From positions 23,374,001 through 23,438,000 of the forward strand of contig NC_043009.1 in the NCBI RefSeq assembly GCF_006345805.1: DNA of 64,000 nucleotides, read 5' to 3'. The stretch is from Octopus sinensis (Eukaryota). A program made the translations under genes and the position numbers. This document shows positions 8,289 through 60,238 of this stretch, piece after piece. Under the pieces are notes generated by a model, which saw only the letters and a program-made list of their open reading frames with translations, did not search any database and was not told the DNA's origin. Within the stretch, counting starts at the first letter, position 1; each line of letters starts with the position of its first letter.

Positions 8289-9056
<768 letters not shown>

Positions 9057-9726
9057 ATATTTCGGAATGGTCATATTGCCAGTTTAGCCAATAAAAACAC
9101 ACGCACTATATATTTGGTGTTATTTTGCTTCAGTGATATTTATTTTTTACATTAATCTTAATCTTATTTCGGCCAAAGTTCTTTCGTCACACTCCTGTGA
9201 CCGCATCAGTGGTCCTTTGTTTTCTTCTCACTTACTTGTGTCTCTCCTTATTAACCGTCAGCCATTTTGTATTTCTATTGTATGTCTTCATTTGCGCATG
9301 CTTATATCTCTATGTGCGTCTATGTTTATTTAGTGTGTGTGTGGGGGGGATGCCTGTAATATTTGTATCTTCTGGTTATATACATTCTTGTAATTTGTAT
9401 TTTGTTTTTGTTGTTGTTGCTTTTGTTCTAATTTTGTTCATGTGTTTACATCCACCCATTATTATCATTACATATGCTTGTATGTATGTATAACAACAAT
9501 ATTAGTAATAATAATAATAAATCTAATCGAAGAAAAAAAAAAAAAGAATATACATATACATATATATATATACATACATATACATATACATATATATATA
9601 CATATATACACACATATATACACATATACATATACATATATATATACACATATACATATATATAGATATTCATTTCTATTTCTTTAATTACCTGTGTATT
9701 TATTATGTTTGCAGGATCCACTATTG

Positions 9727-12500
9727 TCATATGTTGTGGTGTGCGCTATTGCTCCATTCTAGTTTTCTATTCAGGCTAGGTTTATTTTCTATTATATGTG
9801 TAGCTTCTGTAATTTGTCTAATTGTTGCATCTGTTCTATGTGTGGACAATATCTTAATCTCTATGTTATTGATTGATCCCCCGTGTTCTTGTTCGGCGTG
9901 TTGGTACAGAATCGATGAGCTTTTACCTTCCTTGAGTTGTCTCCAATGTTCATTCACCCGCTCACCAATGCTTCTACCAATTATAGATCTGATAGGGTTG
10001 CCTGGCTTTTCAACAACCTTAATTCTTAGTTTAAGTTTATCTAGGGTCCTTCTAAAGCGGTACGCTAGTTCACCTCCAGGGGTGGTGTCAACGAACATGA
10101 CACTCTGGTATTTATGGCTATCATACCAAGAGTTGGCCTTCCCTATTTTCTTTTTTGTCCTTTCTATAGTGTTCCATGACTTGTTCCTATAGAGTGGGCA
10201 AATCCCATTCCTATCATTACATAATATATTATCAAATTTCTTCATGGCTCCTTTGTATACTCTGATCCTTTCTTTATGGCTGTAACCTGAGAACTGCATG
10301 CGGTGAATGAAATACTGTATGTGTCTCTTTAATTCTGTAGGCTCGCACATGCGTGACACATTTCTCATTATTCTGACGAGGTCTGCCATCAAAATATTGA
10401 ATTTGGCATTGCCCGCAATGGCTGGATCAGGTATTTTGAGGCCATAGGTTTTGCATAGTATGAATGAAGGATTTGGGTTTTATTTTTCACAATTTCTAGC
10501 CAGAGTTCAGTGTCTAGTACTGGTAGTCTATGGTTGGGGTGTTTAGTGGGGTAGTCTATTGTGACCTTAATACTCTGGTGGATGGAATTAGCTATTTGCT
10601 GGATGCTCTCCATAGTATTAGTTTCTATTACTATATCAACAGTACTCTCTTGTGGGGGTGCCTTTACTACTATATTGATATCATCAACATAGCGAGAGTA
10701 CATGTTTACGAGTATGGATTTCTGCAGTAGGCATTCTTTAAGCCTTCTGTCCCACCATACCATGAAGAGGTTGGCCACATCACCAGCGATACTAACACCG
10801 ATGGCTGCCCCCTCGTCCTGGGCATATATTTTATTATTAAATTTAAATGTGTGGCCTTTTAGGGTAACTCTTATACTAGCTCCTAGTGCATGTGCGATCA
10901 TTTTCTTTACCTGATGGACATTTGCGGGGCTCCGTATGGCTCTGGTCCATCCGCGCCATCTTTCTATATGTGTCTTCCTAGCCATAGAAGTAATTGTAGG
11001 CGGTCTACCTCTTAAACATCTACTGGGGCAGAAACTACTAAGATTATGTTTATCTAAGTATTCACTATTATATGTCAGTCTAAGTAGGAGGCCCAGTTCT
11101 TCTGTGTCGACATTACAGAACTCCACCTGGCTCTCGTTGATCATCTCCACGCACTTCTCCACTGCAAAATCTACGTCAATCGATGGGTATAGGGATACCA
11201 CATCCATGCTACCTACTATACATCCTGTCAAGTCACAAGTTTTGTTACAGTCACTGATCCTGCTTAGGAGATCTTCTGTGCTGTCACACACATCAGGTGA
11301 CATCCTGATTATAGGGCGTATGATCATTGAGAGGAAGTAGGAGATTCTGTAATTGCTAGCGATATTCGCTCCACAGACTGGTCTTGTTGGTGGTCCTGCT
11401 ATAGGGTCAGTAAAACCTTTATGGTCCTTGCGAAGTCCATACAGTGCCGGGATATCATTGTTCCAGGCTTGGAAATTCTTTGCAGTACGTTTCTGAGGTC
11501 CCAGAACAATTGTCCACATCATCATGTGGGCATTGAGGACCTTTTCTCTCTCCTCATGCGCCTGTACAGTTGTTACTTTTGTATTGGCGATATGAGGTTG
11601 CATTGCCTGGATGTAGTTCGGTAAGCTGTCTATTGACATCCTGCCGGACTTATCCGTGGGAAGGCATATCACCTCTCCGTTCCTCGTGCGCTGAATGAGC
11701 TTCTGTAGGCCACATGCAGGTTTAATCCCTAGTTGTTGGGCATCTGTCTTATTCTGTCTCTGTCTCTTAATGTATAATCCTAAAATCTGTCTAAGTTTGG
11801 TCCTAGCTATAGTGAACTGTGCTTCCATGTGGTCATTAGTACGTCTTGGGATGTATACTCTTTTGTTGAAGGGTAATGTTGTTGGATAAATTCGGTTCAT
11901 GCAGTAAGTTTTGTCGCATACGTTGAAGAATTGAGTGTCAAAGGGATGGGTATACATGTCAATGGTCTCTCTAGGGTTATCTTCATTATCGTTACTGTTT
12001 CCAACATCAGCCTTCCTATTATTATTATCACCATTACCACTACTACTACTACTAGTATTCCTATTACCACCACAATTATCACTACTATCCTCATTACTAC
12101 TTCTACTGTTACCATCACCACTACTACTACCACTATTATTGTTATTACCTTTATTCCTACCATTGCCATTATTACTATCATCGCTAGTGATATATTCATT
12201 GTTCCTGTTTCTGGTATATGTGTTGTTTATATTAGTGTTGGGTTTTATGTCTGTCTGTTGGTCCCTGTCAATCCCCCTGTTGCGGTCGTTATTTTTGTTC
12301 CTATGAGTATTGTTATCTGTTTCGAGTCCGCTGACTCCCTGTCCAAGGATCCTGTTGCATTCAACTTTATTCTCCATCGTGACCCCTATGACACAACTTT
12401 TATTCGTGTCTTTGTGACTATGGCTATCTGTGTGTGTGTTTGTGTGTCGGTTCTCCCTATAATTGTTGTTGTTGTTGCTGTTGTATACGATTTTTCTCTC
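9727..12500 (-). pseudogene. PLE reverse transcriptase-endonuclease ORF, disrupted
   Basis: Motifs TDKSG, PALYGLRKDHK, PTRPVC, GSMDVVSLYPSI, YAQDEGAAIG, YSRYVDDI, LPVLD, then thumb and EN C-terminus ([21 protein letters not shown]). Frameshift near 10390-10420; the GIY-YIG N-terminal half is deleted at ~9976. Confidence 0.88.
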
Positions 12501-12505
12501 TCTGT

Positions 12506-12850
12506 TTGTAAAGCCAGAAATGTGGTCTATAGTATAAGATGTATAGATGTATAGAGGGACGATGCAGTAACAAGACAGTAACATACGTAGGGGAAACTGC
12601 AAGAAGCATTGGTGAGCGGGTGAATGAACATTGGAGACAACTCAAGGAAGGTAAAAGCTCATCGATTCTGTACCAACACGCCGAACAAGAACACGGGGGA
12701 TCAATCAATAACATAGAGATTAAGATATTGTCCACACATAGAACAGATGCAACAATTAGACAAATTACAGAAGCTACACATATAATAGAAAATAAACCTA
12801 GCCTGAATAGAAAACTAGAATGGAGCAATAGCGCACACCACAACATATGA
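12506..12850 (+). pseudogene. GIY-YIG endonuclease segment in the inverted pLTR
   Basis: [34 protein letters not shown]; an 8-bp duplication (gatgtata) at ~12538-12553 shifts the frame. Confidence 0.85.
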
Positions 12851-13360
12851 CAATAGTGGATCCTGCAAACATAATAAATACACAGGTAATTAAAGAAATA
12901 GAAATGAATATCTATATATATGTATATGTGTATATATATATGTATATGTATATGTGTATATATGTGTGTATATATGTATATATATATGTATATGTATATG
13001 TATGTATATATATATATGTATATGTATATTCTTTTTTTTTTTTCTTCGATTAGATTTATTATTATTATTACTAATATTGTTGTTATACATACATACAAGC
13101 ATATGTAATGATAATAATGGGTGGATGTAAACACATGAACAAAATTAGAACAAAAGCAACAACAACAAAAACAAAATACAAATTACAAGAATGTATATAA
13201 CCAGAAGATACAAATATTACAGGCATCCCCCCCACACACACACTAAATAAACATAGACGCACATAGAGATATAAGCATGCGCAAATGAAGACATACAATA
13301 GAAATACAAAATGGCTGACGGTTAATAAGGAGAGACACAAGTAAGTGAGAAGAAAACAAA

Positions 13361-13405
13361 GGACCACTGATGCGGTCACAGGAGTGTGACGAAAGAACTT
13401 TGGCC
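13361..13405 (+). ncRNA. Variant/degenerate minimal hammerhead in the PLE pLTR (mirror copy 9171-9215, minus)
   Basis: GGACCA-CTGATGCG-GTCAC aggagt GTGAC-GAAAG aa CTT|TGGCC. Stems I and II pair, but the core deviates from CUGANGA. Confidence 0.45.
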
Positions 13406-13580
13406 GAAATAAGATTAAGATTAATGTAAAAAATAAATATCACTGAAGCAAAATAACACCAAATATATAGTGCGTGTGTTTTTATTGGCTAAACTGGCAA
13501 TATGACCATTCCGAAATATAACAATATCTGTTTCAACAGACGACTTCACATAAAAAATCTTGCACAAAAAATATTTAAAC

Positions 13581-13638
<58 letters not shown>

Positions 13639-13891
13639 AATTAATCAATATAGGGTGGCAAAAAAAATCTACGAAATTTTTTGCCACCCTATATTTCGTA
13701 GAAATTTTTTGCCACCAGCGGCCTAGTGGGAAAAAATTAAATAGTCATAGACCATTTATAAATTCAACATCAAAATCAAGGAACGGCCATAATAGGCCAT
13801 TCACCCACTAGAAATAACAGCCAAAGCTTCAACCGCAAAACAACATTAATTCCGCAAACCAGGAGAAAATTAAAAAAACATTTACCCTGTA

Positions 13892-13997
13892 GTTCCTTAT
13901 ACGATGCACCGTTTCATCTATTGTTTAATGGTAAACTAACCTGATTAAATTAAATCAAGCTAGTCTTCCATAGGCCGATAGATTCGTCAGTAAGAAC
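13892..13997 (-). ncRNA. Type I hammerhead ribozyme, array copy 1
   Basis: Reverse complement of the fold at 15069-15174. Confidence 0.85.
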
Positions 13998-14374
13998 AGC
14001 CAGATCGGAGCAGATATTTGCACGAGGCACTTCTATCCTTGTCTCGGCAATATCTGACCTAAAATTTTCAAATCATCGCACTCGCGCCAAATTTATCGGC
14101 AGCAAATATAAGCCGCCGATTCCATTACGGAATTAACCAGAAAATTCATAATTAATCAATATAGGGTGGCAAAAAATTTCGTAGAATTTTTTTGCCACCA
14201 GCGGCCTTGTGGGAAAAAATTAAATAGTCATAGACCATTTATAAATTCAACATCAAAATCAAGGAACGGCCATAATAGGCCATTCACCCACTAGAAATAA
14301 CAGCCAAAGCTTCAACCGCAAAACAACATTAATTCCGCAAACCAGGAGAAAATTAAAAAAACATTTACCCTGTA

Positions 14375-14480
14375 GTTCCTTATACGATGCACCGTTTCAT
14401 CTATTGTTTAATGGTAAACTAACCTGATTAAATTAAATCAAGCTAGTCTTCCATAGGCCGATAGATTCGTCAGTAAGAAC
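14375..14480 (-). ncRNA. Type I hammerhead ribozyme, array copy 2
   Basis: Same sequence, +483 bp. Confidence 0.85.
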
Positions 14481-15068
14481 AGCCAGATCGGAGCAGATAT
14501 TTGCACGAGGCACTTCTATCCTTGTCTCGGCAATATCTGACCTAAAATTTTCAAATCATCGCACTCGCGCCAAATTTATCGGCAGCAAATATAAGCCGCC
14601 GATTCCATTACGGAATTAACCAGAAAATTCATAATTAATCAATATAGGGTGGCAAAAAATTTCGTAGAATTTTTTTGCCACCAGCGGCCTAGTGGGAAAA
14701 AATTAAATAGTCATAGACCATTTATAAATTCAACATCAAAATCAAGGAACGGCCATAATAGGCCATTCACCCACTAGAAATAACAGTCAAAGCTTCAACC
14801 GCAAAACAACATTAATTCCGCAAACCAGCGGCCTAGTGGGAAAAAATTTTTTCCCACTAGGCCGCTGGTGGCAAAAAAATTCTACGAAATTTTTTGCCAC
14901 CCTATATTGATGAATTATGAATTTTCTGGTTAATTCCGTAATGGAATCGGCGGCTTATATTTGCTGCCGATAAATTTGGCGCGAGTGCGATGATTTGAAA
15001 ATTTTAGGTCAGATATTGCCGAGACAAGGATAGAAGTGCCTCGTGCAAATATCTGCTCCGATCTGGCT

Positions 15069-15174
15069 GTTCTTACTGACGAATCTATCGGCCTATGGAA
15101 GACTAGCTTGATTTAATTTAATCAGGTTAGTTTACCATTAAACAATAGATGAAACGGTGCATCGTATAAGGAAC
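15069..15174 (+). ncRNA. Type I hammerhead ribozyme, array copy 3
   Basis: Stem I GTTCTTA/TAAGGAAC; core CTGACGA 15076-15082; stem II ATCTAT..ATAGAT with a 56-nt self-pairing insert; GAAA 15151-15154; stem III ACGGT gc ATCGT; cleavage triplet GUA 15164-15166. Confidence 0.88.
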
Positions 15175-15551
15175 TACAGGGTAAATGTTTTTTTAATTTT
15201 CTCCTGGTTTGCGGAATTAATGTTGTTTTGCGGTTGAAGCTTTGGCTGTTATTTCTAGTGGGTGAATGGCCTATTATGGCCGTTCCTTGATTTTGATGTT
15301 GAATTTATAAATGGTCTATGACTATTTAATTTTTTCCCACTAGGCCGCTGGTGGCAAAAAAATTCTACGAAATTTTTTGCCACCCTATATTGATTAATTA
15401 TGAATTTTCTGGTTAATTCCGTAATGGAATCGGCGGCTTATATTTGCTGCCGATAAATTTGGCGCGAGTGCGATGATTTGAAAATTTTAGGTCAGATATT
15501 GCCGAAACAAGGATAGAAGTGCCTCGTGCAAATATCTGCTCCGATCTGGCT

Positions 15552-15657
15552 GTTCTTACTGACGAATCTATCGGCCTATGGAAGACTAGCTTGATTTAAT
15601 TTAATCAGGTTAGTTTACCATTAAACAATAGATGAAACGGTGCATCGTATAAGGAAC
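15552..15657 (+). ncRNA. Type I hammerhead ribozyme, array copy 4
   Basis: Same fold; GUA at 15647-15649. Confidence 0.88.
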
Positions 15658-16034
15658 TACAGGGTAAATGTTTTTTTAATTTTCTCCTGGTTTGCGGAAT
15701 TAATGTTGTTTTGCGGTTGAAGCTTTGGCTGTTATTTCTAGTGGGTGAATGGCCTATTATGGCCGTTCCTTGATTTTGATGTTGAATTTATAAATGGTCT
15801 ATGACTATTTAATTTTTTCCCACTAGGCCGCTGGTGGCAAAAAAATTCTACGAAATTTTTTGCCACCCTATATTGATTAATTATGAATTTTCTGGTTAAT
15901 TCCGTAATGGAATCGGCGGCTTATATTTGCTGCCGATAAATTTGGCGCGAGTGCGATGATTTGAAAATTTTAGGTCAGATATTGCCGAGACAAGGATAGA
16001 AGTGCCTCGTGCAAATATCTGCTCCGATCTGGCT

Positions 16035-16140
16035 GTTCTTACTGACGAATCTATCGGCCTATGGAAGACTAGCTTGATTTAATTTAATCAGGTTAGTTTA
16101 CCATTAAACAATAGATGAAACGGTGCATCGTATAATGAAC
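16035..16140 (+). ncRNA. Type I hammerhead ribozyme, array copy 5
   Basis: Same fold; the single substitution (TAATGAAC) falls at the stem I bulge and preserves pairing. Confidence 0.85.
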
Positions 16141-16517
16141 TACAGGGTAAATGTTTTTTTAATTTTCTCCTGGTTTGCGGAATTAATGTTGTTTTGCGGT
16201 TGAAGCTTTGGCTGTTATTTCTAGTGGGTGAATGGCCTATTGTGGCCGTTCCTTGATTTTGATGTTGAATTTATAAATGGTCTATGACTATTTAATTTTT
16301 TCCCACTAGGCCGCTGGTGACAAAAAAATTCTACGAAATTTTTTGCCACCCTATATTGATTAATTATGAATTTTCTGGTTAATTCCGTAATGGAATCGGC
16401 GGCTTATATTTGCTGCCGATAAATTTGGCGCGAGTGCGATGATTTGAAAATTTTAGGTCAGATATTGCCGAGACAAGGATAGAAGTGCCTCGTGCAAATA
16501 TCTGCTCCGATCTGGCT

Positions 16518-16623
16518 GTTCTTACTGACGAATCTATCGGCCTATGGAAGACTAGCTTGATTTAATTTAATCAGGTTAGTTTACCATTAAACAATAGATG
16601 AAACGGTGCATCGTATAAGGAAC
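16518..16623 (+). ncRNA. Type I hammerhead ribozyme, array copy 6
   Basis: Same fold; GUA at 16613-16615. Confidence 0.88.
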
Positions 16624-16758
16624 TACAGGGTAAATGTTTTTTAATTTTTCTCCTGGTTTGCGGAATTAATGTTGTTCTGCGGTTGAAGCTTTGGCTGTTA
16701 TTTCTAGTGGGTGAATGGCCTATTATGGCCGTTCCTTGATTTTGATGATATATATATG

Positions 16759-16860
<102 letters not shown>

Positions 16861-16953
16861 TATATATAAATATCCTTAAATCCTTAAATCCTTAAAAATA
16901 TTTTAGCCCGAAGGCCGCGGCCATGCTGGGGCACCACCGCTGAATGAGCTACA

Positions 16954-19950
16954 CTAATATGTGAATCCACCTCTGATACGTGGCACTTGATCAATACGGG
17001 AGTTCGATGCCGCTGCCCGCATTTGTGTCTCCTGTCGTGAGGTAGGTTCATCTGGGACCCCCGACAAGAAGAGATCCAGTTTAGTTTTAAAGAAACCCAC
17101 ATCCACACCATGTAAGTCTCTCAGGCATTTAGGGAGGATGTTAAAGAGCTGTGGTCCTCTGAAACCCAAGCTGTTGCTGTATCTGGACCTGTATTTTGAT
17201 GGTGATGTTGGAATCTTTGGCACCATGCAGTGGCGCCCCGTTCTGCGGTTGAGGTAACTTTGAATGCCAAAGTTTGGGATAGGATTTTCCAGATGTATAT
17301 CACCGCATATCTCTCCCGCCTTCGCTCTAGGGAGAAGAGGTTTAATACTTTCAGTCTTTCCCAGTAGCTGATAATTTGCATTGAGACGATCTTCTTTGTG
17401 TAGCTTCTTTGAATTGCTTCGAGTTCTGCTGTTAGTTTTATATTGTGTGGTGACCATAGTTGGGAGCAGTAGTCCAAGCGGCTGAGGACGAATGTTTTCC
17501 AGAGGACCATCAGTGTCTCCTTCTCTCTTGTTCTGAAAGTTCGGAGAATCCATCCAGCTAGCCGTCTGCATTTTATCACCAGATTAGTAATATGCACTTG
17601 GAAAGATGCATCATTGTTCATGTCAATGCCTAGGTCTCGCACTGATTTTGACTCAGGGATTGCAATTCTTCCTGGGCCAGTGTATCCAGTCTGCATGTCG
17701 TTTACCTTTGTGTGCCGGTAGCGCAGGGCCTGGAACTTACCTGCATTAAACTGCATGTTGTTGTCCTCAGCCCACCTGTATATTGTATCCAACTCCTGTT
17801 GCAGATGCGCAATATTTTCAGGGTTTTGTATTGTGTGGGAGACTTTTGTGTCATCTGCATAGCTAGCAAGGGTGGCCATCGTAGCAACTGAGGGCATGTC
17901 TGAAAAGGCCACTATGAACAGCAGTGGCCCCAAGACAGTGCCTTGTGGAACACCGCTTGTTATTCGTGTTTCCTTGGAGGTGGCTCCATTGCTCACAACT
18001 GCCTGTCTTCTGTCTTTTAGGAAGTTGTGCAGCCACTCTCCAAGTTTTCCGCCTATGCCGAGACCACGCAGTTTGTGACAGATCATACCGTGGTCGACTT
18101 TATCAAAAGCTTTTGCAAAGTAGAGATATATTACATCCACATTTGAGCCATTTAGTAGCTGTTTTAACACCCAGTCATAGTGTTGCAGGAGCTGTGTTAG
18201 GCAGCTTCTACCTGGTCGAAATCCATGCTGGGTGTCAGACAGCAAGTCATTTTCTTCAAGGAACATGATTAGTTTCTTGCGGACTATTCGTTCCATGACT
18301 TTACTGATGTGTGAGGTCAGAGAGATAGGCCTATAATTTTTAGCATCTGCTCTGCTACCTCCCTTATGGATAGGGCATATTACCCCCTCTTTCAATTTGA
18401 CTGGGAGCTTACCACTTGCAAGAATGCTCTGAAAAAGAAGCTGTAGCGATTTTGCAAGGGCTCGTTTGCACGATTTGAGAAGGATCGCTGGAAATTCATC
18501 AGATCCAGCAGATGAGTTTGTATCAATCTCATCTATGGCTAGTGTGATATCATCATCTTCAATGTTGATGTACTCAATTTTTGCCTCTTTGGCCGCAGGT
18601 AAAGTGGCAAAGAATTCTTCTGGGTTGTTTACTTGCCTGTGTCCTATAGGTGTAGTGAACACACTTTGGAATTGTTCGTTCAGTATTTCACTTATCATCG
18701 TGGGATTTCCTGTGAGAGAGCCATCTTTTTGGAAGAGAGGTCCTATTCTCAGGTGCACTGTGGCTGTCTCTTTGGCAAACTTAAAGAAAGCTTTAGGGTT
18801 TGATTTTATATTTTCTATTACCCAAGCTTCTTTATCTGCTCTCTCCTTTTCATGGGACTGATGCAGACTTTTCTCAATTTCCATTAGCATTCTCTCGAGC
18901 CGAGACTTCTCACCACTTTTGGTGTGCTTGCTCAGGCGGTTCGCAATCCTTGTCCGTCGTCTCATAAGAATCTTCCTTTCTCTAGGGATCCTGTTTTTGT
19001 TTTTGTGTGTGCTGGCCCTGCACACTGGGACATATTTGTCACATATGGCTTGTATTATGGACATGAAGTGTTTGTGTTTCATGTTAATGTCCGGTGTGGA
19101 GAGACATTTAGGCCAATCCTGTATGAGGATCTCTTTCTCAATCAATTTCCAGTTTGCTTTATGAAAGTTTAAGTTGGAGAGATGATGGATGCTTCGTATA
19201 GGCTGTGTGTCTACGGGGGCTTTTGGTCCATACATAGACAGCTCTATTATGTTGTGATCCGAGATCATTGTCGGCATCACTTTAACATTATGGATAATAT
19301 CCATATTGTTTGTGAAGCAGAGATCCAGTATATTATCTGCCCTTGTTGGTTGTAGAACTATTTGCTCCATGAAAGAGGTATTTGTGAGATGGAGCAGGGA
19401 CTCTGCCTGTGCCTGCTGATGGTGTGTCATCCCTGAGAGCATCTGCCTCCCAGGCCATTCCACATTGGGGAAGTTAAAGTCACTCATGAAGAATACACTG
19501 TTATGTTGTTCAAGGTTGGTGAGGACTTCTCCTATTTTTGTTAAGCAGTCTTCAAACATGCCTGAGTGATTTGGGGCATCTAGTGGGCGATATGTAGTGC
19601 ATATGACGATATTCAGTTGTCTTATGTGTACAATTTGAGTGTCACACACTGAGTTTGAATATGACAACAGGACCTGGGGCGTGAGGTCATCTCGGATGTA
19701 CATTGCAACTCCACCATGGCTCCTCCCTTTTCTATCTGAGCGTATGACTGCATATTGCGGCATGTGTATTTCTGCATCCCCTATACCGGGTCCAAGATAC
19801 GTTTCTGTGAGTGCCATGCATATAGCTTGATTGCATGTCACAAGGTCTCTCAGGAATGAGATTTTCCTTTTACAGTTGCCGCGCAGCAGCCCTCCTACGT
19901 TCAGTAGAAATATTTTTGTGGTGTGTGTGTTGGTGTCTGTGGTGGCCATC
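16954..19950 (-). pseudogene. CR1 ORF2 (APE + RT), inactivated
   Basis: LNVGGL, TETYL, SDFNFP, SDHN, YRPISLTS, QHGFRPGRSC, YLYFAKAFDKV (normally YLDF), GVPQGTVLGP, YADDTK. Frameshift near 17280 to the C-terminal frame ..RGPQLFNILP..VPDEP..SNSRIDQ. Confidence 0.9.
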
Positions 19951-20505
19951 CTGCATCTGTTGGAGGTGACCTTATGTGGTGGTAGTTCCAGCTTTGTGCT
20001 TGTAGCCAGGTCAGTTGCTGAACAATTTTTTGTGCCATGCACAAAAAAGATTGCTGTTCAGCTGCTGCCCTTCTCACATCTGGGTGAAGCTGGCCATTTG
20101 TTGGGTTACCGCGCACTACATCCGCATATCGTCTTTCAGGAGTGGTCAGTGCGCTATTTTTCCTTCTTTTATATTTTCTTTTTCCTTATCTTTTTGTTCT
20201 CCCCGAGGGAGGGATTTTTGTCCCGTGTCCGTGCGGTTTTGGTAGGGCTTCTGATGTGCAAAGCGACAGTTTGCACCTTCGACGCCGTGCCAGCAGTCCC
20301 CCTTCAGGTAGAATTTGCAGATGTTTCTGCCTTTGCCCTTATAGTTCTTGCTGGGGTTCTTTTGTTTTTTCTGAACAGTGTTTGTTTTGGTTCTAATTTT
20401 CTTGTGTTTTACCTTGTTTCCCATCAATTTTAGGGTGCTTTTCTTTTTTTGCGGCCATCGCACCTCTTTGGTCTTCAGTTGTGTTGGGAGCTGGACATGT
20501 GGCAT
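19901..20505 (-). pseudogene. CR1 ORF1 remnant with CCCH zinc finger
   Basis: Lys-rich N-terminus, CKFYLKGDCWHGVEGANCRFAH, then a second frame RYADVV..YFY* overlapping the ORF2 start. Confidence 0.65.
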
Positions 20506-27838: not shown

Positions 27839-27936
27839 ATATAAAATATTATTAGAGACAAAACCACTATTTTGCAAAACAAACAAGGAAAGACTTAATC
27901 AATACATAAAATTTAATAAATAGTCAAAAAAAACCG

Positions 27937-27979
27937 CCACTACAATTGTTTCTTGTCTTGATCGACAATCTTCAGGTGG
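27937..27979 (-). ncRNA. Minimal type I hammerhead
   Basis: Mirror of 28027-28069. Confidence 0.8.
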
Positions 27980-28026
27980 ACTTCCAATAAGTCAGTTTCA
28001 TAATTTGAAACTGACTTATTGGAAGT

Positions 28027-28069
28027 CCACCTGAAGATTGTCGATCAAGACAAGAAACAATTGTAGTGG
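28027..28069 (+). ncRNA. Minimal type I hammerhead
   Basis: CCAC-CTGAAGA-TTGTC gatcaa GACAA-GAAAC aatt GTA|GTGG. All core nucleotides canonical; palindromic stem III ACAATTGT. Confidence 0.82.
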
Positions 28070-28253
28070 CGGTTTTTTGACTATTTATTAAAATTTTATG
28101 TATTGATTAAGTCTTTCCTTGTTTGTTTTGCAAAATAGTGGTTTTGTCTCTAATAATATTTTATAATATTTTACTATAAAATTGGATTTAATCCTAAATC
28201 TGATTTTTTCCCTGTAAATTTGGATTTATTCCCTAATATTTATTATATTACAT

Positions 28254-48180: not shown

Positions 48181-48349
48181 ACACTCACACACAGGACAGG
48201 TTTCCTCACAGAAATATTCCTCTACCAAATTTATTCACAAGGTTTAGTTCGCCTGTGGCTATAGCAGAAAAGAAGAGCACAAGCTGCCATGAGGTGAGAC
48301 TGAACCCGAAAACACATGGTTGTAAAGCGAGCTTCTTAACCACATAGGC

Positions 48350-48900
48350 AGTTTCCGTCGGCGCAGACATGGCTATTTCCATCTTCAGAGTTAAGCATAC
48401 ACACACATCGTCAGCCCAAGATCCAGCTTAATCGGAGAGTTTAAAATCAGAAAGTAATATTCCAGTCACGATCATCGCGTACATTTTCTAGTTTGCACTT
48501 GGCAATTACCATAGGGAAGAAAGAAGAAAAAAAAAGAGAAAAAAGGTGGGTGTGATTTGAAAGAGATTTGACTGCTATCTCTAGCAGACTGAGCGACTAT
48601 GTAAGTGATTCTTTGCCCCCAGCCCGATGTTTGGCAAGGGCGAAAATTGAGTACCAAAATGAATTCACACACTCTCACACACACACAACAGCAATGCCTT
48701 CTCTACGCATGCGCAAATACTGGCACACATACAAAAAGAAAAAACTGCCACCCATCAAGCTTTCGTTTGTTTTGTTTATTATTATTATTATTTTCTTCTC
48801 AGTCTGAAAAGGGAACGACAAGAGAGAGAAAGAGATGCGAGTGGCAGGAAGAGTAGAATGTTTTGGCTTAATGTCTCGTGGTATTTAGTTACGTTCCTTT
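48350..48900. promoter_or_regulatory. Candidate promoter region
   Basis: Unique, relatively CpG-rich; NRF1-like ACGCATGCGCA at ~48705; plus-strand GTAAGT at 48601 and ttttcttctcag at ~48801. Direction unresolved. Confidence 0.3.
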
Positions 48901-59920: not shown

Positions 59921-59926
<6 letters not shown>

Positions 59927-60238
59927 TCAATATAAGGGTAGCAAAAAATTCAATAGAAATTTTTTTCCACCACCAGCGGTCCAGTGAGAAAGAAAAAATA
60001 GTCAACAGACTATATAATATACATTCAACAACTAAGGAATGGCCTTAATAGGCCATTCAACTCACTAGAACGAGCAGCTAGACTCAAACCGCTAAATAGT
60101 AGTAATTCAGAAATCATAGGAAAATTAAAAACATTTACCCTAATCATCTTTGGACAATGCATTGTTTCGACGTACTTTTTGGTAAACCAGCCTAATCAGA
60201 TTAAATTAAATTTAATCAAGTCAATTTAATCAAGAATT
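59921..60238 (-). mobile_element. Diverged, truncated solo relative of the 483-bp monomer
   Basis: Collinear with 13637-13960 (ttaatcaatata.gggt.gcaaaaaa..ccaccagcgg..aggaa.ggcc.taataggccattca..acatttaccct..ggtaaac); flanked by (TA)n; keeps the GAAA/stem III/GUC half of the HHR. Confidence 0.8.

Follow-up and report, generated by a model that had tools for sequence, protein, structure and literature searches.

A 483-bp tandem repeat with an atypical hammerhead motif in Octopus sinensis, a probable non-LTR retrozyme inserted in (TA)n DNA

In animals, the circular RNAs made by ribozymes are known to come mainly from retrozymes, and how these move is a matter of hypothesis. In this report we describe an array of 483-bp repeats at positions 13637-16747 of a 64,000-nucleotide stretch of Octopus sinensis DNA (contig NC_043009.1, positions 23,374,001 to 23,438,000 of the forward strand; the whole stretch is called the window below), which probably represents the class of animal non-long terminal repeat (non-LTR) retrozymes. 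The metazoan members known from coral, mussel, and axolotl (Cervera & de la Pena 2020, PMC7229834) resemble the octopus array in being short, AT-rich, non-coding units in tandem that carry one type I hammerhead ribozyme each, in having a highly self-paired monomer, and in coexisting with Penelope-like elements (PLEs); the axolotl hammerhead HHR_Amex1 also has a helix III suited to dimeric cleavage. According to a 2020 review, retrozyme sequences are without any motif that indicates the mobilizing element (PMC7761336). A 2026 preprint that covers vertebrates only uses the homology of pseudo-LTRs in Xenopus to argue for a PLE origin of animal retrozymes.

Two further groups of hammerhead-bearing repeats invite comparison. 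The pDo500 satellite of Dolichopoda cave crickets is likewise a repeat of ~463-505 bp whose embedded hammerhead processes multimeric transcripts; single- and double-hammerhead models have both been proposed for it, and its compensatory stem changes include the 10.1-11.1 pair (PMC2837043). This satellite is abundant, and its hammerhead is compact (49 nt) and has been shown to cleave, whereas the octopus family forms small dispersed arrays at (TA)n and its cleavage is predicted. The minimal or repeat-type hammerheads of PLEs (PMC4209133; PMC3088659 Fig. S8) share with the octopus motif a palindromic helix III that permits a dimeric active form, an enlarged helix II, and a short helix I, and they too occur as opposite-strand pairs a few hundred bp apart and are tied to PLE integration. 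However, the PLE motifs conserve a G10.1-C11.1 pair and an unpaired nucleotide after A9, neither of which is present in the octopus array, and the octopus hammerhead sits in a non-coding tandem unit without detectable similarity to the neighboring PLE.

PLE insertions themselves are found in tandem and inverted arrangements with a tail on one end, and are biased toward (TA)n (PMC8557442). [quoted passage not shown]

The octopus array comprises 6.3 tandem units with 99% identity. Tandem Repeats Finder (TRF) reports period 483 at 13693-14828 (2.4 copies) and at 14845-16747 (3.9 copies), with 99% matches and no indels, and the two stretches are reverse complements of each other, giving a head-to-head structure. 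On the basis of TRF, the sequence, and the unit alignment, we delimit a minus-sense arm of ~2.4 units (13637-14846, minus strand) and a plus-sense arm of ~3.9 units (14847-16747, plus strand). The 483-nt monomer, taken from one predicted cleavage site to the next (15167-15649, plus strand), has 37% GC and a predicted junction 483/1 of ...GCAUCGUA/UAAGGAAC.... In this numbering, the 3′ end of the minus arm at the outer boundary 13637 lies at monomer position ~234 (...CCCTATATTGATTAATTAT), and that of the plus arm at the outer boundary 16747 lies at position 132 (...CCTTGATTTTGATG). The 5′ ends of both arms meet at a central junction (14825-14868, defined from the sequence and its inverted repeats), which is a perfect 22+22-nt palindrome with its center at 14846/14847. 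Here, on the minus arm, monomer position ~185 is joined to position ~41 through CTGG/CCAG microhomology, and the joint also involves a 22-nt snap-back. Microsatellites of (TA)n, representing the target DNA, lie on the left at 13582-13639 (TRF and sequence), where they divide the array from the neighboring PLE, and on the right at 16748-16873 (TRF).

An earlier note on this DNA, made from the sequence alone, had reported six hammerheads at exact 483-bp spacing, four on the plus strand and two on the minus strand, in units that differ at few positions, none of them in the core, and that have no open reading frame (ORF). These claims are borne out. A 91-nt string, CTGACGA...GAAACGGTGCATCGTA (ending GCATCGTA), is present in exactly six copies with a spacing of 483 bp, on the minus strand at 13900-13990 and 14383-14473, and on the plus strand at 15076-15166, 15559-15649, 16042-16132, and 16525-16615. 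Alignment of the units shows variation in 15 columns, always private to a single unit and never in the hammerhead core; ~11 are real substitutions, and the others are alignment artifacts at the 5′ terminus of unit M0. Differences that are all private would be expected if one template sequence had been copied repeatedly. The longest ORF with a start codon has 42 aa and the longest stop-free stretch 60 codons; the 42-aa ORF has no database record, and a 124-aa translated-monomer query found no match. Exact-pattern scans returned only two chance matches of ~23 nt from metagenomes and none from a prokaryote genome collection, and the array has no LTR-type terminal direct repeats beyond the units themselves. 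At the outer end of the minus arm (13655-13700), part of the terminal hairpin (GGTGGCAAAAAA...TTTTTTGCCACC) occurs again as an inverted copy, which looks like a snap-back or template switch as reverse transcription began.

The layout around each 91-nt string is that of a type I hammerhead, with three helices round the core, helix I open, and helices II and III closed. For the copy at 15069-15174 (plus strand, predicted cleavage after A15166), the parts are the helix I 5′ strand (15069-15075, GUUCUUA), the core CUGACGA (15076-15082), a 68-nt helix II (15083-15150), GAAA (15151-15154), the palindromic helix III (15154-15165), and the helix I 3′ strand (15167-15174, UAAGGAAC). The other plus-strand copies are at 15552-15657 (predicted cleavage after A15649), 16035-16140, and 16518-16623 (predicted cleavage after A16615), and those on the minus strand are at 13892-13997 (predicted cleavage between 13900 and 13899) and 14375-14480 (between 14383 and 14382). 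The invariant nucleotides C3-A9, G12-A14, A15.1-U16.1, and H17 (CUGACGA...GAAA...U-A, then the cut) are complete and identical in all six array copies and in both copies at a second locus introduced below. The earlier description of every unit as an intact hammerhead therefore holds for the core in six of six copies, but not for helix I of the copy at 16035-16140, where a G to T change at 16136 breaks one pair, giving UAAUGAAC.

Helix II folds as had been described in the earlier note, with 6 bp (AUCUAU/AUAGAU), an internal loop, AUGG/CCAU, and then a 14-bp hairpin. Helix III, (A)CGG-UGCA-UCG(U), had been called near-palindromic, and with its loop (ACGGUGCAUCGU) it is a 12-nt palindrome if G·U pairs are allowed, so that it has 4 bp and a UGCA loop in a monomer and 12 bp in a dimer. 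Helix I is not the 7-bp stem that had been proposed, and consists of 6 contiguous bp with one further pair past a bulge. A generic type I descriptor (CUGANGA, helix II of at least 4, GAAA, A15.1-U16.1, helix III of at least 3, H17, and helix I of at least 5), composed after the candidate had been seen, is expected by chance ~0.007 times per dinucleotide-shuffled 61 kb, both strands included, and a looser descriptor gave one unrelated match in 368 kb of other octopus DNA. The motif is thus, by its sequence, a complete but atypical hammerhead with a 68-nt helix II and an A10.1-U11.1 pair, a putative ribozyme.

Searches with the monomer by blastn and nhmmer covered 474 kb of octopus DNA in all, which contains three independent insertions, the array among them, and one remote relative. 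The 483-bp family is dispersed and not extremely dense. Elsewhere in the window, the monomer is similar only to a solo copy at 59924-60236 (minus strand), which has 76% identity, is 5′-truncated inside helix II but keeps GAAAC, and has (TA)n on both sides; its 3′ end (...CCCTTATATTGATTAA) corresponds to monomer position ~234 and adjoins the (TA)n. The third insertion, found at L007 (chromosome OX597832.1, 41055-41838), has 94-97% identity and is likewise a head-to-head pair between (TA)n tracts, with arms that span monomer positions 297-483-234 and 258-483-131 (0.87 and 0.75 units).

All three insertions lie within (TA)n, as the earlier note had stated for the array, and two of the three are head-to-head pairs. 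Their outer ends coincide. Monomer position ~234 is the outer end at window positions 13637 and 59924 and at L007 position 41055, and position ~132 is the outer end at window position 16747 and L007 position 41838. In contrast, the inner 5′ ends differ everywhere (164 and 41 in the array, 258 and 297 in L007, ~420 in the solo copy). Each outer end lies ~10-15 nt 3′ of a hairpin, and both hairpins are present in every unit. The putative distal start of reverse transcription (monomer ~234, from the ends of three insertions) follows a perfect hairpin, GGUGGCAAAAAA...UUUUUUGCCACC then CCUAUAUUGAUUAAUU (15350-15400, plus strand), and the putative proximal start (monomer 132, from the ends of two insertions) follows the hairpin GAAUGGCC-UAUUAU-GGCCGUUC then CUUGAUUUUGAUG (15266-15298, plus strand).

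The predicted cleavage junction 483/1 is read through in every insertion, which indicates that the RNA template was either circular or multimeric. Taken together, the ends have the pattern predicted for target-primed reverse transcription from two fixed internal starts, with both strands primed and the cDNAs joined centrally. This matches PLE integration products (PMC8557442; PMC11167929) in the (TA)n or AT-rich targets, in the head-to-head 5′-truncated copies, and in the two internal starts that leave a tail on one end. The start sites of the octopus repeat are ~101 nt apart, compared to a 30-40-bp tail in the published cases (54 bp in the neighboring octopus PLE), and, unlike a PLE, the repeat encodes no protein. 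We found no insertion termini reported for the published retrozyme families that were considered.

The remote relative, at L007 25929-26079, is 5′-truncated (nhmmer E 3e-5), keeps GAAACCAUGGUC, again with a palindromic helix III, and ends at a (TA)n tract ~137 nt past its putative cut site. Its presence suggests that older subfamilies exist.

Sequence changes in the diverged copies bear on whether the folded structure has been retained. The L007 copies differ from the window consensus at ~3-6% of positions, with the core unchanged; in their hammerheads, a helix I G·U pair becomes A-U, helix II C-G and A-U pairs become U·G and G·U, and an extra C lies past the 6 bp of helix I. Relative to the array, helix III of the solo copy changes from CGGUGCAUCG to CAAUGCAUUG, which converts G-C to A-U and G·U to A-U in a compensatory manner. 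One helix II G-C pair of this copy becomes A-U, and its cleavage triplet is GUC instead of GUA. All substitutions within the hammerhead helices of the diverged copies keep pairing, and helix III is palindromic in three diverged versions. Compensatory changes are also seen in monomer helices outside the hammerhead, for example, CUAGUGGG/CCCACUAG to CUAGUGAG/CUCACUGG. Across the hammerhead, 95.5% of cells are paired, compared to 25-43% when the partner strand is slid, in a set of four distinct sequences with the structure taken from one of them. Three two-sided pair changes were counted, of which two are credible (one each in helix II and helix III, both G-C to A-U), and the third, in helix I, is a spurious alignment of the truncated solo copy.

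Several observations weigh against reading these units as retrozyme monomers with a working hammerhead. The 10.1-11.1 pair is A-U in all copies, not G-C. Watson–Crick pairing is retained, and natural variation at this pair is on record (PMC2837043, PMC3088659), but G-C at this position is nearly universal and is described as the most conserved pair after 15.1-16.1 (PMC3088659, PMC4209133). The earlier note had recommended a scan with hammerhead covariance models, and this was negative: no Rfam hammerhead model matches the whole window at the gathering threshold or the array region at E≤10, and the scans returned microsatellite and hairpin miRNA-like noise only. The 56-nt helix II insert and the A-U pair are the likely causes of this miss. 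A canonical loop-loop contact between helices I and II was not recognized by eye in the array hammerhead; the internal loop after the first 6 bp of helix II (CGGCCU/UUAAACA) could have a tertiary-contact role, and mussel retrozyme hammerheads are likewise without canonical loop contacts (PMC7229834).

Further points on the same side concern divergence and folding. The covariation comes from just three diverged sequences. Over the whole monomer of the solo copy, 19 of 30 changed pairs are kept and 11 of 30 are broken, a figure that is suggestive without being decisive because transitions often retain G·U. Conservation of the hammerhead among dispersed copies, which the earlier note had made a test of its proposal, is seen in the unchanged L007 core and in the substitutions that keep pairing, but the L007 hammerhead region is not clearly less diverged than the remainder of the unit. 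No sequence similarity could be detected between the 483-bp monomer and the adjacent PLE. As a circle, the monomer folds at -145 to -147 kcal/mol (z -6.3 to -6.7 versus shuffles, 61% of bases paired), yet the z values are equally low on both strands (-6.7 and -6.6), so that the hammerhead strand is not singled out. We had considered the strand asymmetry in folding energy (-145 versus -113 kcal/mol) as a sign of RNA from the hammerhead strand, and dropped it because minus-strand shuffles give the same z and the difference is compositional. Lastly, in an isolated 110-nt RNA, the single hammerhead fold lies 5 kcal/mol above the minimum free energy (MFE), with a competing fold that pairs part of the core with helix III; for the L007 variant the gap is 2.1 kcal/mol. 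Thus, the ribozyme drawn in the earlier note has a complete motif but is not favored as a stand-alone fold.

The same predictions favor a double hammerhead. When two hammerhead segments are cofolded, the MFE structure is the classical double hammerhead (-79.3 kcal/mol, versus 2 × -33.6 kcal/mol for the separate segments). In a 651-nt transcript of two units, the unconstrained MFE structure (-206.2 kcal/mol) pairs helix III between units (15154-15165 with 15637-15648) and helix I in trans (15069-15074 with 15652-15657) and leaves the first core unpaired, and a complete double hammerhead costs 6 kcal/mol more. Dimeric behavior is known for the newt and axolotl retrozyme, repeat-type, and PLE hammerheads (PMC7229834, PMC4209133, PMC3088659 Fig. 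S8). On this modeling, the array ribozyme probably acts as a dimer between adjacent units and not as a stand-alone motif. Given the palindromic helix III and the dimer-favoring folds, multimeric transcripts would be expected to cleave, and monomers or circles to be largely protected.

We assign the array to the non-LTR retrozymes because it consists of tandem, non-coding, AT-rich units with a type I hammerhead and a self-paired monomer in a genome that also contains PLEs. The low GC content, the lack of an LTR, PBS, or PPT, and the dispersed insertions are further features found in common with the class. The earlier note had made the same assignment, which now gains support at the sequence level from insertions with fixed 3′ ends, from the PLE-like signature of (TA)n, head-to-head arms, and tail, and from the pairing-preserving substitutions. 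In our judgment, the array is probably a recent insertion of a non-autonomous, non-coding octopus retroelement of this class. As such, it is the octopus representative of a known animal class with an unusual ribozyme, and not a new kind of system. Its distinguishing characteristics relative to the metazoan families are a 483-nt monomer (published circles are ~170-400 nt, and the unit is slightly above the published range of 150-450 bp), a 68-nt helix II with internal loops where ~4-6 bp are published, A10.1-U11.1 instead of G-C, the 12-nt helix III palindrome, and its invisibility to Rfam. As the earlier note had surmised, no description of octopus or cephalopod hammerhead or retrozyme elements was found by full-text literature searches; for the giant squid, the genome paper goes no further than listing 235 matches to Rfam Hammerhead_1.

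Mobilization would be by a PLE, and the neighboring element is a candidate source of the mobilizing machinery and not a part of the array. In the life cycle that we propose, the arrays would be transcribed to multimeric RNA, and the hammerhead of each unit would cut this RNA after GUA at monomer position 483, most likely as a double hammerhead formed by pairing between the 12-nt palindromic helices III of adjacent units. The resulting 483-nt monomers may be ligated to circles. A PLE protein with reverse transcriptase and GIY-YIG activities would then nick both strands of a (TA)n tract and prime cDNA synthesis at two fixed positions inside the RNA, which lie ~132 and ~234 nt past the cleavage site, each just 3′ of a hairpin. 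The circular or multimeric template would be copied round for a variable distance, and the two cDNAs would be joined 5′-to-5′ by microhomology, leaving head-to-head arms of tandem units. In its strongest form, this proposal takes the arrays to be the genomic traces left when a circular ribozyme RNA of 483 nt is reverse-transcribed by a target-primed, rolling-circle mechanism, with the PLE enzyme priming from both nicked (TA)n strands, and we offer it tentatively, as a possibility we would not yet favor.

An alternative that keeps the PLE-dependent, non-autonomous element but gives it a weak, protein-dependent, or vestigial hammerhead seems to us unlikely, although it deserves serious attention. 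Such an element would resemble a short interspersed element (SINE) of PLEs, with an uncleaved multimeric read-through transcript as template, its tandem units coming from a source array or from template jumping and no circular RNA being formed. The lizard PLE offers precedents, because mutants of the PAc hammerhead left in vitro insertion unaffected, the hammerhead cleaved only with protein, and none of the reads terminated at the cut position (PMC11167929); moreover, PLE-type hammerheads with a palindromic helix III are poor cleavers in vitro (PMC4209133). The disfavored single fold, the A-U at 10.1-11.1, and the silence of Rfam point the same way, and the insertions themselves need merely a template that is continuous across 483/1. 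However, a vestigial motif is difficult to reconcile with a full core intact in all eight complete copies, with substitutions in helices I to III that keep pairing, and with a helix III that is palindromic in three diverged versions. The dimer fold is also strongly favored, and amphibian retrozymes with dimer-dependent hammerheads yield abundant circles (PMC7229834).

Other explanations dispense with retrotransposition of a ribozyme RNA altogether. It is highly improbable that the array is an ordinary minisatellite or satellite that arose by unequal exchange, with a hammerhead-like string present by chance and an inversion produced by local palindromic duplication. The near-identical units show no sign of selection inside the array, Rfam does not recognize the motif, and a gigabase-size genome must hold some chance descriptor matches. 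Nevertheless, unequal exchange leaves unexplained why three loci, each of them in (TA)n, share two outer ends but not their inner ends, and both the low chance expectation of the motif (0.007 per 61 kb) and the compensatory changes in helices II and III argue against an accidental string. The head-to-head arms, flanking TA repeats, and absence of coding capacity could equally bring to mind a foldback transposon or one resembling a miniature inverted-repeat transposable element (MITE), with long inverted arms and TA as target. This we consider barely credible, since the two arms stop at unlike monomer positions, 132 in one and 234 in the other, and so provide no matching terminal inverted repeats, their lengths vary by locus (2.4 and 3.9 units in the array, 0.87 and 0.75 in L007, and one single-arm copy), 5′ truncation is variable, and the adjacent PLE, which encodes a reverse transcriptase, has the same asymmetric structure.

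That PLE, which the earlier note had correctly placed beside the array in the (TA)n tract, is of the autonomous type (9053-13581, minus strand). Its ORF (10389-12602, minus strand) has a long low-complexity N-terminal region and a YVDD reverse transcriptase, with a C-terminal GIY-YIG-like segment after a frameshift, and the product is 100% identical to an Octopus vulgaris protein. The element is a head-to-head pair of 5′-truncated copies between (TA)n tracts, with arms at 9049-9982 and 12595-13527 (~930 bp) that are 99-100% complementary, and one arm bears a 54-bp tail (13528-13581) before the (TA)n. The PLE and the hammerhead array were inserted in the same (TA)n microsatellite, 58 bp apart.

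All octopus loci in which this PLE family was sought (L001-L007) contain it, and it has a conserved hammerhead-like motif of its own at 13361-13405 (plus strand) and in mirror image at ~9209 (minus strand), with 17 more copies in L001-L007. The motif, GGACCA CUGAUGC-G-GUCACA GGAG UGUGAC GAAA GAACU(U/C) followed at the cut by UGGCC, has C in place of A9 and U or C at the predicted cut site. From this motif to the two arm ends downstream the distances are 127 and 181 nt, compared to 132 and 234 nt in the 483-bp repeat.

Other features were noted in the course of this analysis. To the right of the array and its (TA)n tract, a 973-aa ORF at 17121-20042 (minus strand) with Exo_endo_phos (APE) and reverse transcriptase domains belongs to an apparently intact long interspersed element (LINE), which the earlier note had called a CR1. 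A near-perfect palindrome of ~330 bp at 27840-28175, by (TA)n-rich sequence, carries minimal hammerhead-like motifs at 28027-28069 (plus strand) and 27979-27937 (minus strand), reading CCAC CUGAAGA UUGUC-GAUCAA-GACAA GAAA CAAUUG UA GUGG, with a palindromic helix III and U-A at 10.1-11.1. The palindrome resembles a second hammerhead-bearing element inserted head-to-head. We also considered whether it might be a PLE pseudo-LTR; its 3′ part matches AT-rich L003 repeats that have no ORF or hammerhead nearby. Weak matches to a relaxed descriptor at 48311-48414 (minus strand) and at L005 18145-18250 (minus strand), with only 2-3 bp in helix II or III and no repeat context, are probably due to chance.

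The octopus family extends the retrozyme class to cephalopods, and its insertion anatomy is that predicted by PLE biochemistry, with two fixed starts of reverse transcription, priming of both strands, and a (TA)n target. This signature gives independent support to the view of the 2026 preprint that retrozymes originate from PLEs. The family also illustrates that annotation by covariance models can miss functional-looking hammerheads with long helix II inserts. Its young, near-identical units are a practical substrate for studies of dimeric cleavage, circularization, and PLE-dependent reverse transcription. If the rolling-circle reading is true, these insertions would be the first evidence at the level of insertion sites for how, and by which enzyme, animal retrozymes move, and the hairpin and start site together would constitute a defined RNA element that recruits a PLE reverse transcriptase.

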